Shown piece by piece: positions 15,801 to 64,000 of a stretch of 64,000 nucleotides of DNA. The DNA is from Octopus sinensis (lineage: Eukaryota): assembly GCF_006345805.1 (NCBI RefSeq), contig NC_043014.1:3348001-3412000 (forward strand), read 5' to 3'. How positions within the stretch are numbered: the first letter of the stretch is position 1; every line of letters begins with the position of its first letter. Below the pieces are notes generated by a model. It did not search any database. It worked only from the letters and a program-made list of their open reading frames with translations, and was not told where the DNA came from. A program made the position numbers and the translations under genes.

Positions 15801-17571
15801 CGGCTGGACGTAGATCGGTTGGTCATGACTGGTTCGTCGGTTGGTTGCTGGTTGGCTGGTTGGTCGGTGGGTCGCCTGGCTGGCTGGTTTGTCGGTTGCT
15901 GGTCGATTGACTGGTTGGCTGGTTTGTCGGTTGGTTGCTGGCTGGCTGGTTGGTCGGTGGGTCACCCGGTTGGCTGGTTTGTCGGTTGGTGGTCGATTGG
16001 CTGGCTGGCTGGTTTGTCGGCTGGTCGTCAGATCGGCTGGCTGCCTGGTTGGTGGGTGGGTCGCCAGGTTGGCTGGTTTGTCGGCTGGATGTGGATCGGT
16101 TGGTCATGACTGGTTTGTCATTTGGGTGCTGGTTGGCTGGTTTGTCGGATGGTGGTCGATTGGTTGGTTGGTATGGTTTGTCGGTTGGTTGCTGGTTGGC
16201 CGGTTGGTCGGTGGGTCGCCTGGTTGGCTGGTTTGTCGGTTGGTTGCTGGCTGCCCGGTTGGTCGGTGGGTCGCCTGGTTGGCTGGTTTGTCAGATGGTG
16301 GTCGATTGGCTGGTTGGCTGGTTTGTCGGTTGGTTGCTGGCTGCCTGGTTGGTCGGTGTGTCACCTGGTTGGCTGGTTTGTCGGCTGGACGTAGATCGGT
16401 TGGTCATGACTGGTTCGTCGGTTGGTTGCTGGTTGGCTGGTTTGTCGGTTGGTGGTTGATTGGCTGGTTGGCTGGTTTGTCGGTTGGTTGCTGGTTGGCT
16501 AGTTTGTCGGTTGGTCGCCTGGCTGGCTGGTTTGTCGGCTGGTCGTCAGATCGGCTGGCTGGCTGGTTGGTCGGTGGGTCGCCAGGTTGGCTGGTTTGTC
16601 GGCTGGACGTGGATCGGTTGGTCATGACTGGTTTGTCATTTGGTTGCTGGTTGGCTGGTTTGTCGGATGGTGGTCGATTGGTTGGTTGGCTGGTTTGTCG
16701 GTTGGTTGCTGGTTGGTCGGTTGGTCGGTGGGTCGCCTGGCTGGCTGGTTTGTCGGTTGGGTGCTGGCTGCCCGGTTGGTCGGTGGGTCGCCTGGTTGGC
16801 TGGTTTGTCGGATGGTGGTCGATTGGTTGGTTGGCTGGTTTGTCGGTTGGTTGCTGGCTGCCTGGTTGGTCGGTGTGTCACCTGGTTGGCTGGTTTGTCG
16901 GCTGGACGTAGATCGGTTGGTCATGACTGGTTCGTCGGTTGGTTGCTGGTTGGCCGGTTGGTCGGTGGGTCGCCTGGCTGGCTGGTTTGTCGGTTGGTGG
17001 TCGATTGACTGGTTGGCTGGTTTGTCGGTTGGTTGCTGGCTGGCTGGTTGGTCGGTGGGTCACCTGGTTGGCTGGTTTGTCGGCTGGTCGTCAGATCGGC
17101 TGGCTGGCTGGTTGGTCGGTGGGTCACCTGGTTGGCTGGTTTGTCGGTTGGACGTGGATCGGTTGGTCATGACTGGTTTGTCGGTTGGTTGCTGGTTGGC
17201 CGGTTGGTCGGTGGGTCGCCTGGTTGGCTGGTTTTTTGGCTGGTTGGCTGGTTTGTCGGCTGGTTGCTGGATGGCTGGTTGTTTGGTGGGTCGCCTGGTT
17301 GGCTGGTTTGTTGGCTGGTCGGCTGGTTTGTCGGCTGGTTGCTGGGTGGCTGGTTGTTTGGTGGGTCGCCTGGTTGGCTGGTTTGTCGCTTGGACGTGGA
17401 TGAGTTTGTCATGACTGGTTTGTCGGTTGGTTGCTGGCTGGCTGGTTTGTCGGCTGGTTGCTGGCTGGCTGGTTGTTCGGTGGTTCGCCTTGTTGGCTGG
17501 TTTATCAGTTGGACGTGGATCGGTTGGTCATGACTGGTTGGTCGGTGGGTCGCCTGGTTGACTGGTTTGTC
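9832..17571 (+). repeat. 7.7-kb modular G/T-rich satellite in the fibrocystin-L intron
   Basis: Built from GGTT/GGCT/GGTC tetramer-derived modules with about 29 copies (counted by eye) of the anchor GGACGTGGATCGGTTGGTCATGACTGG; adenine is nearly absent on the + strand. Confidence 0.97.
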
Positions 17572-17837: not shown

Positions 17838-20627
17838 TATGTTTCTTTATTAGCCACACAGGGCTGCACACAGATAGAACAAATTACAAGGTAGAGCTTT
17901 TCTTTTGAAGGTTTAAAAAAAAAAAAGGAAGGGGGAGTTTCGATCAAAAGGGATCGTAAAAGGAGAGAAAGAGGACAAAAAAAAGGGGGGTTAAAAAAAA
18001 AGGGGAGAGGAAAAAAAAAAAAATTTGATCAATAGGGATCGTTATCACAGAAATGTCAATATGAAGTGTAAAGGGGAGGACAGGTGAGGTTTACCCGTGG
18101 AAAGAAAAGCCTACGGAAAAGACCACGGTAACCTCGGTGAATGGAGTCACATGTTATATTTCTTTTTTTTTTTTTTTGCAAATAAGCAACTCTCTGTTTT
18201 CAATTTCTGGTTCATAGGATCATGCTCAAGGTGGCTTCGTCATTCATACGTGCCATTCTTGCTACATTCACCCATCTTTTTTTAAAACATTCGCTAGACA
18301 AAACTTGCCTCTCTACTCTCACTTTCCTTTTCAAGTGGTACTTGAAGAAGTTGATGAGAGATTGACCAGAGAGGAAAGTGTTTGTCTCCAATCCTTTCAG
18401 ACGCGTCCACCAGATACATTCTTTCACCATAGCCACAAGGATGATGAAAATAGCTCTTCCTTCCCGTTTGAAGGAGGGAGGCGTGACAATATTAACGATA
18501 GACTCAGCTGATAAACCGACTCGTCCCACACGTGACAGCAGTTGTTCGACACAAGCCCACAGGTCGGAAATTGTTGGACACTGCACGAGTGCGTGCAGAA
18601 CGGTTTCGTCGCTCTGACTGCATCTCGGGCAGGTCGGCCCCGTGTTTCTCGAGCCGTGTCTGTAGAGCTTATCCCGAACGGGTAGCGCTTCTCGGTAGCA
18701 CTGCCAGGCAGGGATCTCTGGAAGTTGTCCATGGGCCCTGGCCCGAAAGTCGTCCTGAACAGCGGGTCAGGTACTCCTCGTCGACGTCCAGGTTCGCCCC
18801 GAGCTCGTCGTCGTACCTCCCCTCCACTAAACCCCTATAGAATGCTTTGGTTGTGTTGAAGTCACTCAAGGTCGACCCAGGACGGCAGAGTTGCTTGAGA
18901 GCAACGCGACACTCGCTGTGCCATTCGCCCTTCTTCGGCCTCTTTTTGATCCACGACTGCAGTTCGGTCATGGAGACGAGCTGCGGGAAAGCGTGCCTCA
19001 CAAACGGCGACCACACCTGTTCACCGTCGTCTACATAGAGCCAGAGATGTCGCAGTCTCAGCGCGTGTCTGCGCATCATCAACCACGGCATGCCCAGCCC
19101 TCCTTTTAACGGGTATTGACAGCAAATGGATCGCCTGACCATCGGGACGCATCCTTTCCACAAGAAGCGAAAGAGAATGCGTTCTAGTTTGGTGATGGTA
19201 GGGTCGGGACAAGGTACGACGGTCAGGCGGTAGTAGATGACGGACGCGATGTACGTGTTCGCCACCTCCGCCCGCCTTTTAGGGACAGTTTCCTCTCTCA
19301 CCACCCATTGCCGGGCGAGAGTGACCACCCTACTCGTTATCTCGTTCCAGTTCTTCTCCACTTGGAGTTCCGACCAAACCAGACCCGAGCAACTCAATCG
19401 GGCCGTCGGTCCAGCGTCCCACGACGGAGGCGCTGGTGGACGGCATGGGCTTGCTTCTCCAGGTGCCGAGTCGCAGCCCACTGACTTTTCCCGGTTGATT
19501 TTCGCTCCTGTCACCGCTTCGTAGTTTTTCAGTGTCTCGCCGCCTGCTCGATGTGCTCGTGGCTAGACACTATGACGGTGACGTCGTCTGCATATGCAGA
19601 CACGCTCGTCCCGCATCCCAGTTCTTGCGGGATGCCTCTCAAGGTTGCCAGCTTCCGCAATAATGGCTCGAGAGTCAATACGTATAGAAGCGACGAGAGG
19701 GGGCATCCCTGACGGACCGAACGTGCGATGTCGAAGGGTCTCGATAGATGTCCATTCACGCGAATTACCGAACGGATGCCTCTGTACAAAGCGGCTATCC
19801 AGCCCGGAAGACGGGACCGAAGCCAGCCGCTCCGAGGACCGCCTCCAAGTATCGATGGTCCACCCTATCGAAAGCTTTCGATTGATCCAATTGATCAGCG
19901 CCCCACCCATGCCAGGTTCGTTAACTACCCTGTCTATGATGTAGCGCATCATCAGTGGAGGTTGTCATGGATGGTCCGGCCTGGCACGGCGTATGTTTGC
20001 GCCCTGTCGACCAGTTTCTCGATGACAAGCGCCAACCTCTTGGCTAGCACCTTGGCCAAAATTTTCAAGTCTGCATTAAGCAGAGTGATGGGCCTAAAGT
20101 TATCTATTACATTTCCCTTGTTTAGATCTTTCTTCAGCAGTGTTACGGCTCCTCGGCTCACAAAACCAGGAATGCTCCCGTTTTGCTGCCAGTTGCAGTA
20201 CACCGCCGCCAAGAGATCTCAAACAAGTCTGGCATACAATTGTAAAGCTCGTAGGGTAGACCATCCAAACCCGGTGATTTGTCCCCCGAGCATTCTGCCA
20301 TCGCTTCCTGCACTTCCGCCGCCGTGATGGCACCTTCGCAGCACCCCTGCCTTTCTTGTCGAGAGTCGTGGTAGGCTATGTAGGTAGCACTGAAGTCCAC
20401 CCTACGTTCTGCCCTCCACTCGTTCCGAACAGTCGGGCAAATGCTGCTGAAAGGCCTCACACATTTTACTTGGCTCGAGCAATTCGCGCCCCTGTTCATC
20501 TACCAGGGACCGAATGGTGGCTTTGTTGCCCTGTTGCGCCTCTGCCACCCGGGCCTCTCTCGCGGCTCCAACACCTTCGTTCCTTAGAGCACGCATCCTA
20601 GCTCTGACAGCACATCCTTCGTGTTTG
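17838..20627 (-). mobile_element. 5'-truncated, frameshifted Tx1/L1-clade LINE (RT plus 3' UTR)
   Basis: RT motifs in broken frames: KSPGLDGLPYELY, NFRPITLLNADLKILAKVLAKRL, RQGCPLSSLLYVLTLEPLL, SAYADDVTVIV, GAKINREKS; the 3' UTR ends aataaagaaacata(tcta)n; both ends lie in (GATA)n. Confidence 0.92.
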
Positions 20628-21123: not shown

Positions 21124-21535
21124 CGAGCTGGCAGAAACGTTAGCACGCCGGGCGAAATGCTTAGCAGTATTTCGCCTGCCGTTACGTCCTGAGTTCAAAT
21201 TCCGCCGAGGTCGACTTTGTCTTTCATCCTTTCGGGTCGATAAATTAAGTACCAGTTACACACTGGAGTGGATATAATCGACTTAATACCTTTGTATGTC
21301 CTTGTTTGTCCCCTCTATGTTTAGCCCCTTGTGGGTAGTAAAGAAATAGGTATTTCGTCTGTCTTTACGTTCTGAGTTCAAATTACGCCGAGGTCGACTT
21401 TGTCTTTCATCCTTTCGGGGTCGATAAATTAAGTACCAGTTACACACTGGAGTGGATATAATCGACTTAATACCTTTGTATGTCCTTGTTTGTCCCCTCT
21501 ATGTTTCGCTCCTTATGGGTAATAAAGAAATAATA
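21124..21535 (+). mobile_element. SINE family B dimer (full copy plus head-less copy)
   Basis: The second unit starts at the junction aaagaaat|aggtatttcgtctg near 21348. Confidence 0.88.
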
Positions 21536-25242: not shown

Positions 25243-25551
25243 GGTAGTGAGCTGGCTGAATTGTTAGCATGCTGGGTGAAATGCCTTGTGGCATTTCATC
25301 TGTCTTTACGTTCTGAGTTCAAATTCTGCCGAGATTGACTTTGCCTTTCATTCTTTAGGGGTCAGTAAAAGGAGCACTGGCTGTGCACTAGGGCTGACGT
25401 AATCAACTCTCCCACTTCCCCACAATTTCAGGCCTTGTGCCTATAGGGGAAATAATTATTATTACTAAGGCATTGTCTTTACATTCTGAGTTCAAAATCA
25501 GGGTTGATAAAATAAGTACCAGTTGGAGACTGGGGTCAAATGCGTGGCCAT

Positions 25552-26101
25552 ATTATGTCTGCCGCTACGTTGTGAGTTCAAATTCTGCCGAGGTCCACTT
25601 TGCCTTTCATCCTTTCGGGGTCGATAAATTAAGTACCAGTTACGCACTGGGGTTGATGTAATCGACTTAATCCCTTTGTCTGTCCTTGTTTGTCCCCTCT
25701 ATGTTTAGCCCCTTGTAGGTAGTAAAGAAATAGGTATTTTGTCTGCCGCTACGTTCTAAGTTCAAATTCTGCCGAGGTCAACTTTACCTTTCATCCTTTC
25801 AGGGGTCGATAAATTAAGTACCAGTTACGCACTGGGGTCGATGTAATCGACTTAATCCTTTTGTCTGTCCTTGTTTGTCCCTTCTATGTTTAGCCCCTTG
25901 TGGGCAATAAAGAAACAGGTATTTTGTCTGCTGTTACGTTCTGAGTTCAAATTCCGCTGAGGTCGACTTTGCCTTTCATCCTTTCGGGGGTCGATAAATT
26001 AAGTACCAGTTACGCACTGGGGTCGATGTAATCGACTTAATCCCTTTGTCTGTCCTTGTTTGTCCCCTCTACGTTTAGCCCCTTGTGGGCAATAAAGAAA
26101 T
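25552..26101 (+). mobile_element. SINE family B trimer of head-less units (about 183 bp each)
   Basis: Units at about 25552, 25733 and 25918, joined at aaagaaaY|aggtattttgtctg. Confidence 0.88.
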
Positions 26102-26330
26102 AAGGGATATAATAGGAACCAGCCCTACTAAATTCTATTTTCCTTTTTCAACTTTACCTGTCATCCTTTCGGGGTCACTAAAATAAGTACCAGTTGGGTA
26201 CTGGGGTCGATGTAATCAACTACACCCCTCCCTTAAATTTCAGCCCTTGTGCCTATAATAGAAAGGATCTTATCTTCCTTTTTGTGTAAGTATACTCAAT
26301 AATTCTTCGTATATGTCTGTGTGTTTTTAG

Positions 26331-36582: not shown

Positions 36583-36884
36583 AGAATTATCACTTCTTTC
36601 TTTATTGCCCACAAGGGGCTAAACATAGAGGGGACAAACAAGAAGATTAAGTCGATTACATTGACCCCAGTGTGTAACTGGAACTTAATTTATTGACCCC
36701 GAAAGGATGAAAGGCAAAGTCGACCTCAGAATTATCACTTCTTTCTTTATTGCCTACAAGTGGCTAAACACAGAGGGGGACAAACAAGGAGATTAAGTCG
36801 ATTACATTGACCCCAGTGCGTAACTGGTACTTAATTTATCGACCCCGAAAGGATCAAAGGCAAAGTCAACCTCAGAATTATCAC
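36583..36884 (-). mobile_element. Two tandem truncated SINE-B copies separated by a triplicated flanking motif
   Basis: agaattatcac occurs at 36583, 36728 and 36874, bracketing two 145-146-bp units. Confidence 0.85.
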
Positions 36885-37392
36885 CTCTGGCACCAAAATC
36901 ACAAAAATATATATATATGGCTGTTTGATAGTCAGAGAATGATTTCAATGTGAATCCAGTGACATTGTGGGAACTAGATTATATCCAAAGAGTCGGAGGA
37001 ATAAGGGAGCATCCATTATTCATTGTTCCCTTACAAGAAGAAGCCTCACAATTCATTTGTAACAAGGCTTGCGCTTGCTTGGCTACTACAAGGTCTCAAA
37101 TATATTAAAATCTTATGAGTGATTGTATCGGTTATTTGGTAGGGTCAAACGAGACACCACACTGTAAACTAATCGTTATTATAGACTATGGGTCTGGGAC
37201 AGGTAAGGTAGATATTGTAATTGTCAGGGGACGGGGGGGGGGTAACAGTGATATCCCTGGACTAGCGAACATCTATCAGGTACCTTACTGTAGTATGTAC
37301 CTTTGATATACAGACAGGTTATATATACCTTCATCAAAATGAGGTAGCCCTACTTAGTACATACATACATATAGATATATGTATATACGTAT

Positions 37393-50076: not shown

Positions 50077-51578
50077 TTAACTGACGGGGTTCGGAAATAA
50101 GTGGTAGTTCCTTTTTAATTTTTCACAGGTCTTGCATATCCACTGCTTCTGCTCGTCAGCAAGTTTATTGGGGTCGTGATCCGGGATCAGCGAACCAGGA
50201 AATGGTGAAAATCGACTCAGTTGGTCTCTGGGCAATGGTCTTTCACACGAAATACACATATAGCCCAAACTCTGCTTGGAATACATTTGCATCCCAGCGT
50301 CAGCAGATTTTCCATAGTTAACAACAGAAGAAGAAAATGCAGAACTAGAAGACTCAACCTCTTTTTTCCGATGACCATGGTCAGTTTTTTTCCTAACGTC
50401 TGGCACCGATTTCAGATAAGAGCAGTTTCCATCGCGGTCAATATTACTGCCAGGAACCCCGTGGTACGGATTCATGTAGGAGAAGTTTGACATTCGGTTT
50501 TGCTCAGGGATTATACAGGGGAAGTTTATATCTCTGTCATTGAGGTTGCGACTTTGGTTTTGGTTGAAGAATGGATGGATCACGCCACCGGCTTTGTCGT
50601 TCGGGTCTTTGTTCTGCGACTGAACGCCATAAGGAAACATAGATGCCCTATCAGCTGAAGGGACCTCAGTCTGATAGGGATTCAGGCAGAACGATCCCGC
50701 TGCCATTCCGCTGCTGCCCCCTGATGTTGTTGCTCCACCACCGCCGCCACCACCAGTTGCTGCTGCCGTTGCCGCAGAGACATCCGCACCGGCCCCTGCA
50801 CCAGTTACTCCACGGTCGGCAGGGAGATTTTTGTTTTGTTCCTGATCCATGCAAGGGAAGACCGGGCCCTTGTCATGCGTGTCTTTGTTAGGGATCAACG
50901 TCATACCTGGAAACACTGGGCCCCCTAAACCAGCCCTGTCCAGTTCGTTCTTGTCAGCAATCTGATCCATACACGGGAACACGCTTCCCCTTTCAGGAAC
51001 AATTTTGTTTACTTGATTTCGGCTCATAAACACGCTGTCTCGATCCGACATTGTCTTGCCATGGTTTTCCGATGACATGTTCGACTTGGAGTAAAGGTAG
51101 TCCGATTGCCTGTTCGTCACTGCCTTTTGGTTTGAGCCGACGTATGCAAAATCAGGAGACTGCTCCTCATTAGGATTCGGTTTTGGGGTCTGCAGACGGT
51201 CGTCTTTACTTTTCATTTGATCAATGCAGAAACTGTCTACATTTCCATCTGGGCCGCAGGTGTCTGTGTAGCGTAGCAGAGAATCTTGTTCAACCATAGT
51301 TGACCCTTTACCACGGGGTTTTTGTCCCGTCTTCATCATTTGTACCATAATGCGCTTTCTCTCCACACGCATCTTGGAATTCATTCGCATGCGTTCCAAC
51401 CGTTTCTGGCGCTCGTCAAGTGACTCAGTCTCTAAGCGACGCCTTTGGTACTGTCGCATCTGTTCCAGTCTTTTTTCACGAGGATTTATGCAGCCACCAC
51501 TAAACTGGTTTCCATTAGATTTCGACCCCTGGTCACAGTTTGGTCCACACATCATGTTACTAGCACATTCATAACAAT
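50077..51578 (-). CDS. STPR-repeat protein, terminal coding exon B (two STPR-like repeats, FPCM-type repeats, C-terminal CxxC-x36-CxxC)
   Basis: Minus-strand acceptor ttttatctatttgcag|AT at 51578 (phase 1, in frame with exon A); 500-codon open frame ending TAA at 50077; CISC...WICKTC at 50256-50125. Confidence 0.88.
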
Positions 51579-52059
51579 CTGCAAATAGATAAAATATACA
51601 AAATATACGAGCTTTTAATTACAATATAGACATAATTTAAAGTGTGTGTGTGTGGGGGGAGTCTATATGCATTGATTCTCCAGTCTCTCATCCTCTCTCT
51701 GCCTCTATTCACACACACGCACCCGCTCCCTCATGCATGTGTGCATGCATCTCACATATGCGTGTATCTTTGTCTCACACACACTCACAAAACTATCCTC
51801 TTACATGTATGAGTCTACATATATATGTATGTGTGTGTGTGCGCATGTATATATGTATGTATGTATATTTATAGAGAGAGAGAGAGAGAGAGAAAGAAAG
51901 ACAGACAGATAGCTATATGTAGATACATGTGTGTGCATATGTATCATGTTTATTCTCCCCATACATACCAGTTAACCAGTATGTAAGAGGGTGGTATGTG
52001 TGTATAAGTATACACACATACCACCCTCTTACATACTGGTTAACTGGTATGTATGTGCA

Positions 52060-52099
<40 letters not shown>

Positions 52100-54010
52100 C
52101 TGTATATTTCCGCGTATAAGACAACCTTTAAATCCTAAAATTTACCCTAAAAATTTGGGGTTGTCTTATACCACCTTTCAAAAACCCAAACTTTGGGTTT
52201 TAAGTGATTTTATAAGTAAGCTAACCTCAGCCTCGGTGCAATAACCACAGACATACATGAACAGATTAGTAAACGAGAAAAATTATAATATAGGTAATAA
52301 AAATATTAGTAATATTATTGGTACATCTTCATAATAAATTCTATATTATTGAAATCAACTTTTATCTATGCAAGCTCAGCTGAGAAAATGTAAACATCGA
52401 GTCATGGTTACACTCACAACTACCTTTATCTTTCGTTAACCTTTCAAAAATTTTAATGGTGATATATAACTGTAGTAATAACATTTAGAATAACATATTT
52501 AGATTTTTCATAATATACCTATTATCATTTGGTGGTAAATAACACAATTTGGATTACACACAAATCCATAAAACTATTCTATAAAATTTTTTTCCATGAA
52601 ATTATTCTACAGTAGTTGCATTTAAAACATAAGACATTGTAATATGTTTCTTTCCTATTAAGTTAAATAATATTAATAAAACATCAAACCTGTCAAAATG
52701 TTTTTATCTAAACCCCATCAAATTCCTCATTATCATCACTATCTGCTTCTAAAACTTCCCTCATACATATCACAGGATTCATCACATATGGCATCATCGT
52801 AAGGATTCCACTCTGGTGAATCGACTTTGTTGTCGCTATTGTACAGAATATCATCTTCGGTACCATCCATGGCATTAGAGACACTGCCTTTTAAAAATGA
52901 TTTTATCACATTTTCTACTTTCACTTTGTCCCATGCCTTTATAACAAAATCACAGAGAACTTCAAGTGAGGCAGCACAATTAGCTCCCCCTTTTGTAAAA
53001 GATACTTCTCCATTCAACCTCCAGTCATTCCATTGCTTTCTCACATTATCTTTAAATGGTTTGTTTAAACTGACGTCAAGTGGTTGCAGTATAGAAGTCA
53101 AATCACCAGGAATAACAGCAATATCAGAATTGCTTTTGGATAACCATGTTTTAGTAGTTGCTGTTACGTGGCTACAAAACATAACCCAAACCAATAAACT
53201 GCGTTTGTTTTGTATGACACCTGGCCACCTGTTCCAAATATTCTCAATCCATAATTTTACACCACTCAACTCCATCCACCCTTTCTTGTGAAAATGAACA
53301 AAAATGCCAGAGGGAAACCTATTTTGGGCTTTGACTTATGTTTAAAAATAACCATGGGTTTAATTTTCTACTGTCAGCCATGCAGGATAATACCCCCATA
53401 AACCTCGTTTTCTCGTATCTCGTGCTTTTAACATGCAGTTTTTACCCCTTTCAAATCTACCATTTTGTTACCCAGCACGTCAAAGTTTAACGGAGTTTCA
53501 TCCATATTTCCAATATGAGACAATGGAAACTGATCCCTTTTTCTCAGCTGGATGATGAACTGGTGAAAATTGGTTTCTTTGTGATCGAGATCTCTTGGGA
53601 GTTTTGGGGTGATTTTTATTTTCTCCTTTATTACCAGATTTTTTTTCTGTACATAAAACGATTGCACCAGCTTACTGTTGCTTTAAAATCTTGACTTTCT
53701 TCTTTATATGATTTAGCTCCTTTTAGGGTGTAAGATCTTATTCTATTTCATGTTACAATGTAGCCATCTTGTCCCTGCTGGAGGACCCATTTTGCTACAG
53801 CATTTTTCAACTTTGGCCAACGAGTTCTTCCTCTTCTTATTGCACGTTTTTGTTTTGGCATTTGTCTCAATTTTCCCCTCATTCTTTCTCCACTCTTGGA
53901 CCATCTTCTCGGCAGCATCGAAAGTTTTAGCAGCAGCTGCTTCTATAACTTCCAATTTGAAACTAGCCTCATATTTTCTTCTTTTGTCTGGTGGTTGCAT
54001 ATTTCTATGG
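52100..54010 (-). mobile_element. Decayed pogo-superfamily (POGK/Passer-like) DNA transposon in the intron of the STPR gene
   Basis: Fragments: Brinker-like DBD KRRKYEASFKLEVIEAA (53743-54000), IGNMDETPLNFD (53428-53667), DDE_1-like AVIPGDLTSILQPLDVSLNKPFKDNVRKQW (52739-53275). Terminus TA|CTGTATATTTCCGCGTATAAGAC at 52098 with an internal 13-bp IR (52114-52126/52159-52171). The other TIR was not found. Confidence 0.88.
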
Positions 54011-54294
54011 GTATAAAATAATTATAAAATTCACTTAACTACACAATTTGTGATTTTACTTGAAATATAGGTAAATGATTATTAATACACCTGGTTGTTT
54101 GTAACTGTTTAGAACATTTCAGTATTATGAACCACCATTATCGTATTGAAGTCAAGGCAAGGCAACACAAACATATGCACACCAACACACACACATACAG
54201 GATGGGCTTCTTTCAGTTTCCATCTACCAAGAGAGAAACATCATCACACAGTGGGAGAATTACAATAAGTTCATGATATTGTTATACTACTTAC

Positions 54295-55203
54295 CTTCAT
54301 CAATAGAAGACATTGGTGGTGTAGAAAGACAATCGCATCCTTTTTTCCTCTTTTTGCAGTCTTGCGAGCATTTCATGTTGGCATAGCAGCCATCTTTCCC
54401 CATATTGCAGTTGTTCATGTAAGAACAATCGGACATGCTGTTGGACATGGATTTATTCTGATCCGAAGAGTAGCAGCCGAAGCTGTTTCCGTCTCCGTTT
54501 GTGGTCACTTGGTTCTGAATCTGGTTGAAAGACGGGAAGACGACTTCTCCGGTGGAGCTCCTGTCCATCACATCTTTATTGGTACTGAGTGGTTCCATAC
54601 AAGAGTAAGAGCCAGCCGAAGTTCCGTTCGAGTGGCTTCTGCTCTGGCATTGTCTACCATTCTCTTTCATGCAAGGAAAATCTCCGTTGCAACATAGATT
54701 CTCTTGCTGACATGACTTCCCACACTGGTCCGAGCAACAGGGGCTGTTTTGCATGCTGCTGCAACTTTTGTCGTTCTGACACATGTAGCCGCAATTTTTA
54801 TCCATGTTCTTGGAGCTTAATTTCATCGGGAAACTACCACTATCCCGGTTAAGAATCGACTGGTATTGTAATATATTCTCGTTATCTTTCATGCGTCGCA
54901 TCAGAATTGAAATCGCCTGCGACTTTTTCTTCCCTTTCTGAGTGTTTCCCAATATTTGTGCCACGGCTTTTTTCCTCTCTTCGCGCCGCCTCGCGTTCTC
55001 TCGCATGCGCACCAGCCTTCTCTGTCGTTGCTCGGGGGGTTCGTTTGCCATGCGCTGGTGCTGATACCGCTTCATGCGCATCAGTCGCTTTGTGCGCTGT
55101 GCATCAGTCTCCGTATGAAGACGCCTTCGTTGCTTCAGTCTCATTTTCAGCAATTTTCGGTCTTTTGGCGTCATCATCTCAGCTGTAGTGTTGTCATAGT
55201 AAT
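54295..55203 (-). CDS. STPR-repeat protein, exon A (three 23-aa STPR-like repeats plus Cys/Ser/Asn-rich region)
   Basis: Minus-strand acceptor tttgttttgtag|AT at 55203 and donor GAA G|gtaagt at 54295; 909 nt, symmetric phase 1/1. ETDAQRTKRLMRMKRYQHQRMAN and EPPEQRQRRLVRMRENARRREER fit the E-x4-R-x2-RL-x2-M-x2-Y-x3-R pattern of Bombyx FMBP-1 STPR repeats. Confidence 0.85.
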
Positions 55204-55845
55204 CTACAAAACAAATGACACAACAGAAACAAACATTAAGAAAATATCTCAGAAGAATAACAAGAATGACAACAACAATTCTTACAAATTTAGCACAAGG
55301 CTAGCAGTTCTGATGGGAAAGGGCAGGTTGATAATCAACCCTAGTACATGACTGGTACTTAAGATCCCTAAAGGATGAAAGGCAAAACTTGACCTCAGAA
55401 CTTAATGCCAAAAGAAATACTGTTAAGCATTTTAACCAGCATTCTAATGGTTCAACCAGCACACTGCCTTATTAATAATAATAATACTAATAATAATGAT
55501 AATAATAATAATGATCCTTTCTACTGAAAGCAGAAGACCTGAAATTTGGGGGAATGGGACTAGTTGATTACATCGGCCCCAGTGTTTCATTGGTACTAAA
55601 CTTATTGACCCCGAAAGGTTGAAGGGCAAAGTCGACCTCAGCGGAATTTGAACTCAAAACATGGAAATGGACAAAATGCTACTGAGCATTTTGCTCATCA
55701 TGCTAAGGATTCTGCCAGCTGGCCACCTTAAATAATAATAATAATAATAATAATAAGTAATAATAATAATAATAATAATTATTATGATAATGATGATAGT
55801 AATAATAATAATAATAATAATTATTATGATAATGATGATGATGAT

Positions 55846-58800
55846 GATCATCATCATCGTTTAACGTCCGTTCTCCATGCTAGCATGGGTTGGACGGTTC
55901 GACCGGGGTTCTGGGAAGCTAGAAGGCTGCACCAGGCTCCAGTCTAATCTGGCAATGTTTCTACAGCTGGATGCCCTTCCTAACGCCAACCACTCCGTGA
56001 GTGTAGTGGGTGCTTTTTACGTGCCACCTGCACAGGTGCCAGGCGGGGCTGGCAACGGCCACGGTCAGATTGGTGTATTTTATGTGCCACCGGCACGGAA
56101 GCCAGTCGAGGCGGTGCTGGCATCGGCCACGAGTCGGATAGTGCTTTTTACGTACCACCAGACCAGGGATCCTGGCTGGTTCAATTCGATTTCGATTTCG
56201 CTTGCCCCAACATGTCCTCACAAGCAAAGGGGGTTGGCATGGGTGCCTGTCGTACGGTCGCATTGGAGTATTTTACGTGCCACGGCCACGAGTCGGATAG
56301 TGCTTTTTACGTACCACCAGACCAGGGATCCTGGCTGTTCAATTCGATTTCGATTTCGCTTGCCCCAACATGTCTTCACAAGCAAAGGGGGTTGGCATGG
56401 GTGCCTGTCGTACGGTCGCATGGAGATTAGTATTTTACGTGCCACGGCCACGAGACGATAGTGCTTTTTACGTACCACCAGACCAGGGATCCTGGCTGGT
56501 TCAATTCGATTTCGCTTGCCCCAACATGTCCTCACAAGCAAAGGGGGTTGGCATGGGGCCTGTCGTACGGTCGCATTGGAGTATTTTACGTGCCACGGCC
56601 ACGAGTCGGATAGTGCTTTTTACGTACCACCAGGCCAGGGATCCTTGGCTGGTTCAATTCGATTTCGCTTCCCCAACATGTCTCACAAGCAAAGGGGGTT
56701 GGCATGGGTGCCTGTCGACGGTCGCATTGGAGTATTTTACGTGCCACGGCCACGAGACGGATAGTGCTTTTTACGTACCACCAGACCAGGGATCCTGGCG
56801 GGTTCAATTCGATTTCGCTTGCCCCAACATGTCTTCACAAGCAAAGGGGGTGGGCATGGGTGCCTGTCGTACGGTCGCATTGGAGTATTTTACGTGCCAC
56901 GGCCACGAGTCGGATAGTGCTTTTTACGTACCACCAGACCAGGGATCCTGGCTGTTCAATTCGATTTCGATTTCGCTTGCCCCAACATGTCTTCACAAGC
57001 AAAGGGGGTTGGCATGGGTGCCTGTCGTACGGTCGCATTGGAGTATTTTACGTGCCACGGCCACGAGTCGGATAGTGCTTTTTACGTACCACCAGGCCAG
57101 GGATCCTGGCTGGTTCAATTCGGTTCGATTTCGATTTCGCTTGCCCCAACATGTCTTCGCAAGCATGGGGGGTTGGCATGGGTGTCTGTCGTCGGATGAG
57201 GTTCTATATCGTCTTCGCTTGCCTCAACCGGTCTTTGTGTCCAAGGGAGGAAAGGCATTCATAAGTGGGCTGGGCTCACTTGTCCTGCCTGGTCTTCTCA
57301 CGTACAGAATATTTCCAAAGGTCTCGGTCTCTGGTCATTTCCTCAGTGAGGCCTAAAGTTCGAAGGTCGTGCTTCACCACCTCGTCCCAGGTTTTCCTGG
57401 GTCTACCTCTTCCACGGGTTCCCTCAACTGCCAGGGATTGGCACTTTCTCACACACCTATCTTCATCCATTCTCGCCACATGACCATACCAGCGCAATCG
57501 TCTCTCTTGCACACCACAACTGATGCTTCTTAGTTACAACATTTCTCTCAAGGTGCTAACGCTCTGTCGAGTATGTACACTGACATTACACATCCATCGG
57601 AGCATACTGGCTTCATTCCTCACGAGCTTACGCATGTCCTCAGCAGTCACGGCCCATGTTTCGCTGCCATGTAGCATGGCTGTTCGTACACACGCATCAT
57701 ACAGTCTGCCTTTTACTCTGAGCGAGAGGCCTTTAGTCACCAGCAGAGGTAAGAGCTCCCTAAACTTTGCCCAGGCTATTCTTATTCTAGCAGTTACACT
57801 TTCAGCGCACCCACCCCCACTACTGACTTGGTCACCTAGATAACGGAAGCTATCAACTACTTCTAGTTTTTCCCCCTGGAAAGTGACGGAAGTTGTTTTC
57901 TGCAGATTTTCGGAGGTTAATGCTCCCGAGCATCTGCCACATACAAAAACTATCTTCCCAGTTAGCCTACCTTTGACATTGCTGCACCTCTTATGTGTCC
58001 ATAGCTTACACTGGGTACATCTTATAAGTTTCTACCTACCTACAACCCTTTCTACAGATCGAGCAGGGCCATCTTCCTGAAGATATTTGTGGATTGTCTA
58101 CCTTTCTACTTATTAGTACTTTGGTTTTAGCTAGGTTGACTCTAAGGCCCCTTGATTCTAAACCCTCCTTCCACACCTGGAACTTCTCCTCCAGTTCTGA
58201 TAGTGACTCAGCAATAAGAGCAAGGTCGTCAGCGTAGAGGAGCTCCCAGGGACAGCCTGTCTTGAATTCCTCCGTAATTGCCTGGAGTACTATGATAAAT
58301 AGGAGGGGGCTGAGTACTGAACCCTGGTGGACCCCAACCTCTACTTTGAATTCTTCTATGTACATGTTGCCAACCCTAACCTTACTTACGGCATCTCTGT
58401 ACATGGCTTGCACAGTCCTTACCAGCCATTCATCTATCCCTAGTTTCCTCATTGACCACCAGATAAGGGATCGGGGGACCCTATCAAAAGCTTTCTCCAT
58501 GTCAACGAAAGCCAGGTACAGGGGCTTATCTTTGGCTAGGTATTTCTCCTGCAGCTGCCTTACCAGGAATATAGCATCAGTGGTACTTTTCCCTGGCACG
58601 AACCCAAACTGCATCTCATCTAAACTAACTCTCTCTCTAATTAGTTGGGCTATGACCCTCTCCGTAACCTTCATTACTTGATCCAACAGCTTGATACCTC
58701 TGTAATTATTTGTATCTAGGGCATCACCTTTACCTTTGTAGCAGTTGACTAGTATGCTGCTGCACCAGTCATTGGGTATGACTCCTTCGTGTATCACCTG

Positions 58801-59036
58801 GTTGACTATACGGGTGACTAGGTTATAGCCGACACTGCCAGATATTTTGAGCATCTCTGCAGTAATTCCTGATGGGCCTGGGGCTTTCCCTGTCTTCATG
58901 CTTCTAATTGCCTTAGCTACCACGGAACTATCAACTCGGATAGCTGGTCCCTCTGTAGGGTCAACATTCGGCAGACTCTCTTTATCCCATTCATTTTCCT
59001 CATTCAGTAACCTTTCATAGTGGCGTCTCCAAGCTT
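55846..59036 (-). mobile_element. 5'-truncated RTE-clade LINE with a (GAT)n tail
   Basis: ORF 58923-58036 has GKAPGPSG, NYRGIKLL, QFGFVPGKSTTDAIF, FVDMEKAFDRVPR, GVHQGSVLSPLLF and LLYADDL; it continues through frameshift/stop to AMLHGSETW and RRLRWYGHVARM...RGRGRPRKTW; the 3' UTR ends gttaaacgatgatgatg; embedded in (AAT)n. Confidence 0.95.
56127..57190. repeat. Tandem array of about 7 copies of a 150-161-bp unit inside the RTE 3' UTR
   Basis: The unit ccacgagtcggatagtgctttttacgtaccacc...gtattttacgtgccacgg starts at about 56127, 56287, 56448, 56600, 56750, 56903 and 57061. Confidence 0.95.
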
Positions 59037-59070
59037 GATAGTAATAATAATAATAGTAATAGTAATAGTA

Positions 59071-59104
<34 letters not shown>

Positions 59105-59530
59105 ATAATAATAATAATGATGATGATGATAATAATAGTTCAAAGTTTTGGCCGATAGAATATATATATATATATAGTCAATAATAAAAGGGTAAAACTA
59201 ATTAATTATTAATTAATTTTACCAAGTAGTGTTCAGTATGTAAAAAGACCATTTACGGTATATTTAAAACATTACGTTATATAATTAGGGTTCAGTAAAA
59301 TAATTTACTTTACCACACACCAAACTTTTTAGAAATAGCAGCCAAAAATTTTACCTATTTCTTCTACTGTAAGAAAAATCTCCCAGACAATGCATAGTTA
59401 TTTTTGAGTATGCATTGTCTGGGAGATTTTTCTTACAGTAGAAGAAATAGCTAAGACTTTTGGCTGCTATTTCTAAAAAGTTCGGTGTGTGGTAAAGTAA
59501 ATTATTTTACTGAACCCCATTTTTATAACG

Positions 59531-59596
<66 letters not shown>

Positions 59597-60161
59597 TCAT
59601 TGTTTAACATCCGTTTTCCATGCAGGCATGGGTTGGACGGTTTGACTGAGGTCTAGAAAGCCAGTGGCTACACCAGGCTCCAATCTGATCTGCAATGTTT
59701 TTACAGCTGGATGCCCTTCCTAATGCCAACCACTCTGAGAGTGGCATTAGGAAGTTTTTTAAAAGTTAATTCTGATTTTTGTCAGTGAACAGGTCGCAGT
59801 CTTAAAGCGACGAAAATATTTTGACAAAATTAAACTTAAATGTTGAAGTGAATCAAATGGCTTTTGTGTTTCTTAAATGGCTTACAAACACCTTCCACGC
59901 TGCAATTGTAACTCTGTATAATTTTGTTGCTTTGCGATTTTGAAGATGCACCCTTCGAACATTGGGTGATATGCCACGCTTGAGAAGACTCGTCAAGCCA
60001 AGTGAAATCATGCTTATGGTTGATGTCAGTGTTGCGTAACTGGGCACCCGTGGCGAGGGCCTTGTAAGAAGCACTGTTTGAACATACAGAATTAACTTTT
60101 AAAAAACTGTGAATAAATAGGCATAACATTTGACAAAGCAATCTGGATGCTGAAGGGTTAA

Positions 60162-60382
60162 CCCTTTAGTGTTTGCATTATTCTGCCAAAATTAATGCTT
60201 TTACATCCTCATTGTATTGAACTAATCATGCATCATCTTGTAGCTATGAGATTTTGATGATGTAGCTGTTAATTTTTAAAACGATATTGTGGGGTTGGTG
60301 TGAGAGATCAGATCTGGCCAGTTTGAACATAAAACAGGTAGAATACTTTTGGCCGGATATGACCGGTTTGAATGCTAAAGGG
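60162..60382. mobile_element. piggyBac-type MITE
   Basis: TTAA|ccctttag ... aatgctaaaggg|TTAA. Confidence 0.85.
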
Positions 60383-61139
60383 TTAAACCAGATTATTTCT
60401 CTCTGTGAATAAAAAAAGGTGAAATTAATATCTTTGGAATTAGTAATTTTAACACTTCATGCGACAGTTTACCAGAGCTGGTACAGCTTCACCGGTACCA
60501 AAATCTAGTAACCCAATAACTGAGTCTGACTCCAAACTATGGTTGTGGCTGTAGTTTAGGTGGTCGTGGCTATTTATAAGATAGTAGCTGCTGTAGCTGA
60601 GGCATGGTGGTGAAGATAACTGTAATGGTATAATGTGGTGGTGGTGGTGCTGGTGGTGGTAATATGGTGTGATGGTAATGGGTGCAGTAGAACTGTGGTG
60701 GTGATGTTGGCCTTAGTGTAGTAGTGGTTGTAGTAGTGTGGTGATGGTGGTGGTGTTGGCGGTGGTAGTGTTATGGAGGCTGGGAAAGGTTACTGTAGTT
60801 CCACCCACCCCTGTTTATTTGTTTGTTTATTTATCTATTTATTTATTGTAAAAAGAATCTCTGGGCAGATGGGAAGGAGGGGGAAGGGGAGGAAGCAGGC
60901 AGAAGGACGGGGGGGGGAGGGGGAGGAAGCAATCAGGATGCAGCGGCAGTTAATATCTATGTTGCTTAGCAACAGATCAGTCACTCCCCCCACCCCCCAC
61001 CGCCATCACTGCTCCAATATACACAACCACATCCCAATTCAGATATCACACACACACACACACAGCACACACACCTAAACATACGCAAGATATTATCTAC
61101 CTCTGCTAGATAAGAAAATACAGGATTGAGAATACAGGC

Positions 61140-61178
<39 letters not shown>

Positions 61179-61254
61179 AGATGGAGAAAGAGATAGAGTG
61201 AGAGTGGGAGAGAGAGAGACAGACAGACAGAAAGGAGTCTGGTAAGAGGAGTAT

Positions 61255-61845
61255 GTATGGAAATACATCAATATATATGCAAATGTGTGTAGATGAGCAT
61301 ATATATGTGTGAGTATATTTATGTATGTGTGTATGTATGTATGTACATATATATGTGTGTATGTGTGTGTGTGTAAATGAAAATGTGTGTATATGTGTGT
61401 TTGTAAATGAATGTGTGTGTGTGTGTAGATGAGCATATGTATGTGTGTGTATGAATGCGTGAGTATATATATATGTATGTATGTATATATATGTGTGTGT
61501 ACATATATATATGTGTGTGTATGTACATATGTGTGTGTGTGTGTGTGTAGATGAGCATATGTATGCATGTGTACGAATGTGTGAGTATATATAAATGTAT
61601 GTATGTATGTATGTACATATATGTGTGTACGTGTGTGTAAATGAAAATATGTGTGTTTGTAAATGAATGTGTGTGTGTGTATGAATGCGTGAGTATATAT
61701 ATATGTATGTATGTATGTACATGTGTGTATGTGTATATATACATATATATATGTGTGTGTGTGTGTGTGTAAATGAAAATATGTGTGTAGATGAATGGGT
61801 ACAAGTGTAAATAAATATGTGTGAATGTGTGTGTGTGCTTGCATG
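61255..61845. repeat. Compound (TG/TA) low-complexity array with recurring aaatgaaaatatgtg and agatgagcata modules
   Basis: Visible periodic modules. Confidence 0.85.
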
Positions 61846-62462
61846 GGGTAGGAAAATTGGGTGCCAGCCTCCACCAGCCAAAAAAAAAAGTGATTTGTCA
61901 AGATAAAGGGGAGAAAAAAGCAGGAAAAAAAGACAGATATGAGCCCAGCGAAAAATCTAGTGAATCAGAGTGTCTGAGTTAATGGAAGGTTCTAGAAAGA
62001 AATCACCCATCCCACAGACCCCTACCCAGTTTGGATTTCTTGTAAGGCTTCTTTGTGAAAAAAAAAAAAAAAAGCGGGTCCTGATATAATAATGATCCTA
62101 AATGTTTAATTATACCACCAGTATACGCTCAAAAAATTAACAAAGATTTCAAAAATTAGGGTCCTTAAATTTATACAGATCATTACAAAATTGACACCAA
62201 ATTCTGGAAAACAGTATGTGTATGTGTGTGTGTGTTTATTCTTTTACTTGTTTCAGTCATTAGATTGTGGCCATGCTGGAGCACCACTCAGAAAGTTTGA
62301 ATTAAACAAATCGATCCCGATATTGATTTTATTTTCAAGCCTGTACTTAATCTATTGGTCTCTTTTGCTGAACTGCTAAGTTATGGGGAACGTAAACAAA
62401 CCATCACCAGTTGTCAAACAGTGGTTGGGGACAAACACATGGATATATATATATATATATAT

Positions 62463-62755
62463 ATCACATGATCACGTGACCGACCAGACCATCAGATGTT
62501 GCTACACATCGCTGGTCACAATGCATTCGCATTGTTTTAGCCTTCGAACGACGCCACCCCGCTGGCTAAGCGAGCAGGCTAACAGAAGAAAGAGTGGTGA
62601 AAGAGTACAGCAGGGATCACCACCCCCTGCTGGAGCCTCGTGGAGCTTTTAGGTGTTTTCGCTCAATAAACACACACAACGCCTGGTCTGGGAATCAAAA
62701 CCGCAATCCTCCGACCGCGAGTCCACTGCCCTAACCACTGGGCCATTGCGCCTCC
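62463..62755 (-). mobile_element. SINE with the family-C head but a different 3' part
   Basis: Matches 26601-26765 then diverges to an unrelated tail ending cacgtgatcatgtgat(at)n. Confidence 0.8.
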
Positions 62756-64000
62756 ATATATATATATATATATATATATAAGTAGGCTTCTTTCAGTTTC
62801 CATCTACTGAATCCACTCAGTTTCCGTCGACCAAATCTACTCACAAGGCTTTGGTCAGCCCAAAAATGCCATGTGGCAGGACTGAACCTGGAACCTTAAA
62901 CAGGTGAGAAAGTACCATGAAGGCAAATCCAATCTGTGTTGGATGGATTCATCAACATCATCAAGATATCTCACCTGTTTATAACTTTATCTGAAGATGG
63001 TGGATTATATGTTATGACACATCTATAAAATTCTACTGAAACAGCTGCTGTAAATTTTTAAATCTATTTATGCTCCCTTTTTTTATGCCCATGTTGCACC
63101 TAGACCCAGTCCAAAGTTCTAGGTGCAATATAGGACTTTGTTGCACCTAGTTCTATGTGCAACATAGATCTACAGCTTAAATAAGGCGGCAGGTTGGCAG
63201 AAACGTTAGCACACCAGGTGAAATGCTTAGTGGTATTTTGTCTGTCTTTAGGTTCTGAGTTCAAATTCCTCTGAGGTTGACTTTGGCTTTCATCCTTTTA
63301 AGGTCAATAAATTAAGTACCAGTTGCGTACAAGGGTTGATCTAATCGACTGGCCCTCTTCCCCAAAATTTTGGGCCTTGTGCCTAGAGTAGAAAAGATCT
63401 ACAGTTTAAACTGGATTTGGTATGTACATATCTACAATATCCTACCAACACCTGATAACTTCATGTTTGTTTCACTTCACTATGAACCTTATGCTATTGC
63501 ACCTAGCCATTTGTGGCATCCTACATCTTGATGTACCTGGATTCTATTGAAACCAATAGCTAATCTATATGTGTGCGTGTGCGTTAATATGCTTCTATAA
63601 TGCAAAACATAACCACTTATTTAGCACAGTATATGCTCTATAACATTCCAATACATACACCCAGTAAATATATTTGTGTTAAAATTCACCTGAACACATA
63701 ATGTAGGTGTGCAGGTGGTAATAATAAAGGTGATTGATTTAATGACTTTCATCTATTTTCCAGGTAAAGGATCTTCATTTCACACATCAAAAACAATAAG
63801 ACTGCTCACATCATGAAAATGCACACACACATGCAAACAAACATGCACACATACACACACAATCATCATCATCGTTTAACGTCCGTTTTCCATGACAGCA
63901 TGGGTTGGATGGTTCAACTGAGGTCTGTGAAGCCAGAAGGCTGCACCAGGCCCAGTCAGATCTGGCAGTGTTTCTACAGCTGGATGCCCTTCCTAACGCC

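Follow-up and report, generated by a model that had tools for sequence, protein, structure and literature searches.

LOC115221555 is a gene of Octopus sinensis that lies partly within C18:3348001-3412000, the 64,000-nt stretch of DNA analysed here (hereafter the window; positions given without a contig name are window positions). Two long open reading frames (ORFs) on the minus strand of the window, ORF A (54287..55300(-), 337 amino acids, aa) and ORF B (50077..51618(-), 513 aa), are the last two of the three large coding exons of this annotated, uncharacterised host gene. Its product carries ten copies of the 23-aa STPR, arranged in three arrays, and ends in a four-cysteine (Cys4) finger. To our knowledge, the STPR is a rare all-alpha DNA-binding fold whose function is known from one silkworm transcription factor only.

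Gene model, single locus and selection

The exon boundaries can be read directly from the splice-site letters (a caret marks each site). The open frame of exon A extends upstream of its first Met to a phase-1 acceptor (ttttgtag^AT, 55203) and ends at the phase-1 donor ATT GAT GAA G^gtaagt, with the final exon base at 54295, while exon 3 opens at another phase-1 acceptor, ctatttgcag^AT TGT TAT GAA, with its first base at 51578. The junction between them reads ...IDE-D-CYE, and the two-exon splice, counted from the first Met, gives 794 aa free of stops. Coding exon 1, on the same strand, lies beyond the window, ~15 kb upstream (C18:3420113-3418193, 1921 nt, equivalent to window 70193-72113); it is a 643-aa open frame whose ATG stands directly after an in-frame TAA and which closes with a phase-1 donor (...ATT AGT CAA G^gtgagtaa). 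Joined in their compatible phases (1 / 1-1 / 1), the three exons encode 1443 aa without a stop, a product that agrees residue for residue (100% identity, 100% of the length) with the RefSeq entry XP_029647615.2, "uncharacterized protein LOC115221555". Full-length orthologues in the same 90%-identity cluster come from O. vulgaris (CAI9737178.1, 1443 aa) and O. bimaculoides (XP_014771913.1, 1441 aa), both named 'STPR domain-containing protein' in UniProt, and the RefSeq/ENA models in the three Octopus species join the exons into proteins of 1441-1443 aa. A literature search on the LOC and XP identifiers of the gene found no paper that mentions them.

An earlier reading, made from the letters of the window alone (the sequence-only reading), had joined two long frames by canonical phase-1 splice sites at a DEDCYE junction, and the sites at 54295 and 51578, read directly, bear this out. 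The two-module protein of ~800 aa with a 3+2 layout of repeats that it derived from this splice was lacking exon 1, and is replaced here by three modules, a 5+3+2 layout and 1443 aa. Its description of the gene as unnamed stands in that the gene is uncharacterised, but not in that it is already annotated as XP_029647615.2 / LOC115221555. Within the window, the gene comprises the following features.

50077..51578, minus strand: coding exon 3 (exon B), the terminal exon, residues 944-1443, with the stop TAA at 50079-50077; it contains a vestigial first repeat, STPR array 3, FPCMDQ/FSYM-type low-complexity repeats, a Gly/Ala tract, a basic cluster and the putative zinc finger
50125..50256, minus strand: CxxC-x36-CxxC finger (CISCERPLPRD...QWICKTC), residues 1385-1428 as located by regular expression, followed by 15 residues and the stop
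51358..51495, minus strand: STPR array 3, two 23-aa repeats, GCINPREKRLEQMRQYQRRRLET / ESLDERQKRLERMRMNSKMRVER
51579..54294, minus strand: intron 2, 2716 nt, gt...ag
54295..55203, minus strand: coding exon 2 (exon A), 909 nt, symmetric phase 1-1, residues 641-943; it contains STPR array 2, a KKAVAQILG tail, a Cys/Ser/Asn-rich low-complexity region and a KKRKKG basic cluster
54974..55180, minus strand: STPR array 2, three 23-aa repeats, EMMTPKDRKLLKMRLKQRRRLHT / ETDAQRTKRLMRMKRYQHQRMAN / EPPEQRQRRLVRMRENARRREER
55204..64000, minus strand: 3' part of intron 1, which runs on to C18:3418192, 6.2 kb past the window end

LOC115221555 is a single-locus host gene under purifying selection in every exon, and not a transposon. 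In a six-frame search of the genome (2.72 Gb), exon A as query found three places, namely exon A, exon B and the upstream frame of exon 1, and exon B as query found the identical three places, all at C18:3.398-3.420 Mb; the N-terminal 171 aa are likewise single-copy in the genome. Many dispersed near-identical copies, as a Helitron-like element would leave and as the sequence-only reading had named as the pattern that would speak against a domesticated gene, were looked for across these 2.72 Gb, where exon 2, exon 3 and the N-terminus match one locus only. The O. bimaculoides locus (L045) holds the three same exons with identical donor and acceptor letters, and collinearity between the two loci extends to flanks and introns, with exon-containing blocks 90-93% identical and other non-coding blocks mostly 77-88% identical.

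Estimated by the Nei-Gojobori method between O. sinensis and O. bimaculoides, synonymous divergence (dS) over the whole gene is 0.170 and non-synonymous divergence (dN) 0.0219, for a dN/dS of 0.128. By exon the ratio is 0.112, 0.153 and 0.120 in exons 1, 2 and 3, respectively; it drops to 0.05 in STPR array 3 and to 0.022 in the N-terminal segment, the lowest of the gene, and the finger segment (residues 1371-1443) shows 0 non-synonymous and 4 synonymous differences. Two features expected of a domesticated gene are found together: in three Octopus species it occupies orthologous, collinear positions as one copy, and the finger segment is under purifying selection. Pfam matched only STPRs in the protein, even at E<=10, with Rep, helicase and DUF6570 (PF20209) absent from all exons; the earlier view of an intact host gene with neither Rep nor helicase is upheld by this Pfam result, the dN/dS of 0.128 and the one locus. 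An active transposon was rejected on the single locus, the lack of Rep, helicase and DUF6570, and the orthologues under selection.

STPR arrays and the repeated exon unit

The ten STPRs keep an unbroken 23-aa register within their three arrays, at residues 164-278 (five repeats), 649-717 (three) and 972-1017 (two); the three repeats at 55180-54974 and the two at 51495-51358 had been recognised correctly from sequence alone. The Pfam family STPRs (PF21107) matches the two-exon protein at E=7.8e-11 and 42.7 bits (gathering cut-off 27), with the best stretch at residues 7-65; exon 1 reaches 30.1 bits and exon 3 alone 20.4 bits, under the cut-off of 27. The STPR structure of FMBP-1 (PDB 5d23) was matched at E=6.8e-12, with ~45-50% identity over 46-53 aa, and Bombyx FMBP-1 scores 24-60 bits per array against the gene, the 24 bits being those of exon 3.

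In the FMBP-1/DNA structures, each repeat forms a helix that spans 4 bp of the major groove; Arg6, Arg9, Leu10, Tyr16 and Arg20 touch the DNA backbone, and Glu1, Thr/Ser2 and Arg9 stabilise the helix (PMC4856987). Arg6 and Arg9 are each present in eight of the ten octopus repeats, with Lys in the other two, Leu10 in nine and Arg20 also in nine (Lys in one). Tyr16 is kept in four repeats and is Asn in five, Glu1 is kept in seven and Thr/Ser2 in five, and arrays 1 and 3 each open with a degenerate repeat. Since the phosphate-contact positions Arg6, Arg9, Leu10 and Arg20 are mostly kept, the three arrays would bind DNA.

The octopus protein shares with Bombyx mori FMBP-1 (PDB 5d23/5d2q/5d2s) the strict 23-aa repeats, their register and the backbone contacts Arg6, Arg9, Leu10 and Arg20, and differs from it in the architecture around them. 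FMBP-1 is a protein of 218 aa with one C-terminal four-repeat array and no zinc finger, whereas the octopus protein has 1443 aa, arrays of 5+3+2 repeats, long low-complexity linkers, an N-terminal domain, a C-terminal Cys4 finger and often Asn in place of Tyr16. Host proteins of the ZNF821/CG14440 type also pair an STPR array with other domains, which in ZNF821 are zinc fingers; these fingers are of the C2H2 type, and ZNF821 has a single STPR array. Vertebrate ZNF821 and Drosophila CG14440 are both among the animal STPR proteins (PMC4856987), and no orthology of the octopus gene to ZNF821 or the other animal STPR proteins was detected.

Behind each array stands a conserved tail (RKAIAQILG, KKAVAQILG or KRIMVQMMK). 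Next come 200-350 aa of low complexity, rich in Ser, Gly, Asn and Asp (in exon 2 Cys-rich instead) and marked by repeated motifs of the FSYL, FPCMD and FPYL types, and last a K/R cluster (KRKKKK, KKRKK or RKK...HRKK). Sequence comparison shows the three exons to be diverged copies, in tandem, of a single ancestral unit. Exon 2 is 39% identical to exon 1 and 29% to exon 3, and an acceptor context (^AT-x-Y/N-E/D) and a Q^GK boundary are conserved between units. The layout of the unit can be given as a phase-1 acceptor, an STPR array ending in R-V/E-E-R-K/R-K-A-I/V-A-Q-I-L, ~200-350 aa of low complexity studded with short F/L-S/P-Y/C-L/M motifs, a K/R cluster and an S-x-I-x-Q^G boundary. Even the vestigial repeat of exon 3, ASNMMCGPN, has its counterpart in AEMMTPKD.

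A distant homologue with a single ORF, found on contigs from two other samples (P0001, 436 aa, ERR3431203; and P0008, ERZ21867824), combines three STPRs, FSYL/FPCMDQ repeats and the finger. Residues 17-286 of P0001 align to exon 2 and residues 46-436 align to exon 3 end to end; its STPR array is 62% identical to that of exon 2, 42% to exon 3 and 37% to exon 1. A phase-1-type acceptor (tccttag^AT) precedes the homologue. The donor position of Octopus exons 1 and 2 (ISQ^G, IDE^G) corresponds in it to CAAG^GTAAGT, which is translated there as coding sequence, ...INQGKF.... Within +/-10 kb of this single-unit homologue there is no second unit and no N-terminal exon, and a search for exon-1-like ORFs in other taxa found none within the length range searched. 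Duplication in tandem, from the acceptor to the latent donor, would have given the symmetric phase 1-1 exons, with exon 3 keeping the finger and its first STPR decaying.

Beyond its five STPRs, exon 1 carries the start codon and a single-copy N-terminus of 163 aa, for which Pfam gave no match. The top PDB matches of its first ~100 residues, which start MQICFRIDSGRDFTLDF, are several ubiquitin chains, all weak (E 0.017-1.5), and a single-sequence AlphaFold2 (AF2) model, with a predicted local distance difference test score (pLDDT) of 36.5, yields only a beta-beta-alpha-beta-beta order and is too poor for a fold search.

The terminal finger, Helitron families and surrounding repeats

The terminal CxxC-x36-CxxC arrangement described from sequence alone is indeed present at residues 1385-1428, and the core of the finger is invariant across distant homologues. 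The octopus finger, of a CxxC-x31-36-CxxC type, has no Pfam match. When 1.84 billion representative proteins were searched with a profile built on the C-terminal 100 residues, only the clusters P0001, P0002 and P0010 came up and, in addition, P0012 (E 9.8e-8); the gene family was thus found in three 50%-identity clusters among these representatives. Among the low-ranking matches, P0013 (TPR/CHAT) and P0014 (Ig/GPCR) are spurious by their Pfam content, and P0011, a repeat protein, is spurious by its sequence.

P0012 carries DUF6570 (E 6e-23) and an OTU domain together with five CxxC-x41-44-[YW]ICxTC fingers, the last of which ends 5 residues before DUF6570. In the octopus genome itself, five decayed DUF6570 copies bear this finger at the corresponding position, the OTU domain being confirmed in one of the two that were scanned. 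Aligned by hhalign to seven such pre-DUF6570 fingers of the Helentron/Helitron2 type (HLE2), the finger of the gene gives a probability of 96.2% (E 2.2e-9, 44 columns, 34% identity); a Helitron ORF of the HLE1 type, used as negative control, did not match the finger profile. The gene and the N-terminus of HLE2 transposases (DUF6570, with or without OTU) have in common a finger of the form [YF]-x-C-[IV]-[SA]-C-x-R ... [WY]-[IV]-C-x-T-C, which in HLE2 proteins ends ~5 residues before DUF6570 and in the octopus gene is followed by 15 residues and then the stop. In other respects the gene is unlike HLE2: it is without DUF6570, OTU, Rep and helicase, it is single-copy at one conserved locus, and its arrays do not resemble the basic repeats of HLE2. 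These alignments bear out the connection of a CxxC...W[IV]CxTC finger with Helitron-like ORFs that the sequence-only reading had drawn, and place the finger directly N-terminal to DUF6570 in HLE2-type proteins.

STPRs have at least 111 matches in the O. sinensis genome, and the loci inspected among them are of three kinds. One is formed by HLE1-type Helitrons, whose dispersed ORFs combine STPRs rich in Ala and Ser with a CxFCxAKKW...CC finger, and whose long downstream ORF shows, to the eye, Rep and PIF1-type helicase regions. Helitron ORFs of 794-1353 aa with N-terminal STPRs, no internal stops and, again by eye, Rep and PIF1-type helicase regions lie at C4:77915582-77920728 (L041) and C3:40844000-40848458 (L043), and their relatives, many of them 5'-truncated or short, are scattered over the chromosomes. 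On C29, at 2625000-2645200 and 3036000-3048500 (L044 and L034), a 69-bp unit that translates in one frame into 23 aa resembling an STPR (ASETAEQRALRNTQNAAATAKAR) forms long tandem arrays, the source of dozens of STPR matches that pass Pfam. In appearance these arrays are a satellite that arose by amplification of Ala-rich STPR sequence from the N-terminus of a Helitron. A further tandem cluster, at C3:141946000-141973100 (L010, L022, L025), consists of three single-ORF genes of ~170 aa, each with four FMBP-1-type STPRs (66 bits by Pfam in L010), and these are the likeliest true FMBP-1-like host genes of octopus. They resemble LOC115221555 in having host-type, Pfam-positive arrays in the same genome, and differ from it in having four repeats, no Cys4 finger on reading the ORFs and scores of -1 to 26 bits against the arrays of the gene.

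The arrays of the gene score -3 to 10 bits when compared with HLE1 and HLE2 N-termini sampled from its genome, and Helitron STPRs did not come up as matches in the genome searches with its exons. The HLE2 relics of octopus match the gene in their order from N to C, with basic ~23-aa repeats first and the finger after them; as STPRs, these basic repeats were rejected, Pfam leaving them unrecognised even at E<=10. In the HELIANO survey, STPRs are almost exclusive to HLE1, and DUF6570, located within the transposase ORF, is the marker of HLE2 (PMC11417382). With STPRs going with HLE1 and DUF6570 with HLE2, therefore, no single known Helitron lineage supplies both halves of the gene.

The introns of the gene harbour elements of other kinds, one of them in intron 2.

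52739..54021, minus strand: decayed pogo/Tigger-type transposon in intron 2 (Pfam DDE_1 fragments, E=4.8e-18, and a Brinker-type HTH DNA-binding domain, BrkDBD, E=1.4e-6), frames broken; it contributes nothing to the gene product

Intron 2 of O. bimaculoides measures 1428 nt, and alignment between the two introns is confined to their ends, at 86-89%, and to two internal stretches of ~50 nt. The pogo element appears to be absent from this intron, which is ~1.3 kb shorter, so that a lineage-specific insertion or deletion would account for the difference. Intron 1 spans ~7.8 kb in O. bimaculoides (L045, CM046620.1:44634445-44653972, which holds 1258 N) and ~15 kb in O. sinensis, where it contains a reverse-transcriptase fragment of a long interspersed nuclear element (LINE) at 57534-59139(-) (RVT_1 E=6e-32, then a weak PHD-like finger) and a 158-bp tandem repeat at 56124-57192 (6.8 copies, 93% identity); sequence related to this repeat recurs past the window end in intron 1 (L008) and also in the vicinity of the O. 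bimaculoides locus.

Elsewhere in the window, a 7.6-kb G+T-rich minisatellite occupies 9890-17512, with a 55-nt period, TGGT/CTGG units, ~130 copies, a G+C of 0.60 and an extreme strand skew (AT skew to -0.9). Tandem duplications of a ~146-185-bp unit (GTATTTCGCCTGCCG...GGGTCGATAAATTAAGTACCAGT...) are found at 21167-21532, 25551-26221 and 36583-36888, with another copy just upstream of exon 2 (55300-55420); the unit looks like a family of short interspersed nuclear elements common in the genome. Two retroelement remnants lie on the minus strand, one at 6177-7094 with a 305-aa frame and a CCHC-knuckle-like motif (CYICGSEQHLKKDC), the other at 18212-19562 with two overlapping frames like the C-terminal part of LINE ORF2.

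Origin and significance

The best explanation as a whole, to which we give a probability of roughly 0.72, is that of a host STPR gene with an HLE2-type finger, encoding a multivalent DNA binder whose unit was triplicated. An STPR host gene of the FMBP-1 type would have gained the N-terminal finger of an HLE2 transposase as its terminal coding segment, cut exactly where DUF6570 begins, and the unit would then have been triplicated by tandem exon duplication in the octopod lineage. The resulting protein would present three separate DNA-binding arrays, spanning ~20, 12 and 8 bp and tethered by long disordered linkers. Its basic clusters could be nuclear localisation signals, and its terminal Cys4 finger probably binds zinc and adds a nucleic-acid or protein contact. 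Judged by these features, the protein is probably a multivalent nuclear binder of AT-rich or periodically repeated DNA, bridging or clustering its sites. Of the Helitron-like origin suggested by the sequence-only reading, the part that concerns the finger survives, in view of the HLE2 match at a probability of 96.2%, and the part that concerns the STPR arrays does not, these being FMBP-1-like (24-60 versus -3 to 10 bits).

Several points weigh against this explanation. The RefSeq model is a prediction, and skipping of exon 2 would keep the frame too, with a product of 1140 aa; DNA binding, zinc binding and nuclear localisation are likewise predicted from sequence. With Asn at Tyr16 in five of the ten repeats and Glu1 gone in three, target preference may differ from that of FMBP-1. 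Single HLE2 fingers score only 8-18 bits against the finger profile of the gene, so that the significance of the likeness would come from the repeated matches and the profile-profile score, over 44 columns that are mostly Cys, aromatic or Ile, and the AF2 model of the finger reaches a pLDDT of only 52, too poor for a fold search. A ubiquitin-like fold of the N-terminus, suggested by weak PDB matches and a low-pLDDT model, is tentative. The timing of the triplication is uncertain, and the transfer of the finger may have run from transposon to host or from host to transposon.

It is possible to go further and picture a chimeric gene, so far known from octopods and one related lineage only, in which an STPR binder took the HLE2 finger and grew, through tandem duplication of a giant exon with latent in-frame GTAAGT donors, into a protein of three arrays and ten repeats. 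Such a protein could act at Helitron-like ends or on satellite DNA of periodic sequence, where it might repress the ancestral elements or compete with them; we hold this fuller scenario to be rather unlikely. A purely host-born gene would instead carry an ordinary host Cys4 finger, either captured by Helitron-like elements or resembling theirs by convergence, with no domestication at all. Such an origin would agree with the host type of the STPRs, with the weak scores of single fingers and with the recurrent gene capture by Helitron-like elements, in which STPRs are among the captured domains (PMC11417382). We nevertheless consider it improbable: HLE2-type proteins of two origins, P0012 and the octopus relics, have the finger at a fixed place right in front of DUF6570, the gene ends exactly where DUF6570 would start, and DUF6570 marks a widespread group of elements (PMC11417382), set against a gene family of only three clusters among 1.84 billion representatives.

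Domestication of a whole module, in which STPRs and finger both derive from the N-terminus of one Helitron-like transposase that lost Rep and helicase and was co-opted as a regulator, was the origin favoured from sequence alone, and we now regard it as quite improbable. Helitron ORFs in the genome do carry Pfam-positive STPRs upstream of Rep/helicase, the HLE2 relics do show basic ~23-aa repeats and finger in the order of the gene, and the finger homology, at a probability of 96%, is what such an origin would lead one to expect. Yet comparison of the arrays with the HLE1 and HLE2 N-termini sampled from their own genome yields no more than -3 to 10 bits, compared with 24-60 for Bombyx FMBP-1, the HLE2 repeats fail as STPRs in Pfam, the local HLE1 finger (CxFCxAKKW...CC) differs and does not match, and STPRs are nearly confined to HLE1 as DUF6570 is to HLE2 (PMC11417382). 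Finally, that the ORFs are separate genes or pseudogenised tandem paralogues, as might be read from the end of ORF A at EGK-stop two codons past the donor, the in-frame internal Met-Met near the start of ORF B and the likeness of each ORF to a partial copy of a P0001-like unit, is very hard to maintain when all junctions are phase-compatible with donor and acceptor letters identical in O. bimaculoides, database models in three species join the ORFs into 1441-1443 aa, the homology of exon 2 reaches upstream of its first Met to the acceptor, and dN/dS is 0.11-0.15 per exon, so that no exon is a pseudogene.

A host STPR gene that took up an HLE2-type finger and was enlarged by triplication, as we prefer to read LOC115221555, adds a new architecture to a known DNA-binding family and is not a new class, and automatic annotation already flags its STPRs. 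Within that family, its arrays of five, three and two repeats would allow the influence of array length and spacing on DNA-target preference to be tested in a natural protein. The gene would also be a clean example of gene growth through duplicated, symmetric phase 1-1 exons with latent donors, and it is a candidate case of the recruitment of a Helentron-type transposase finger into a host gene.

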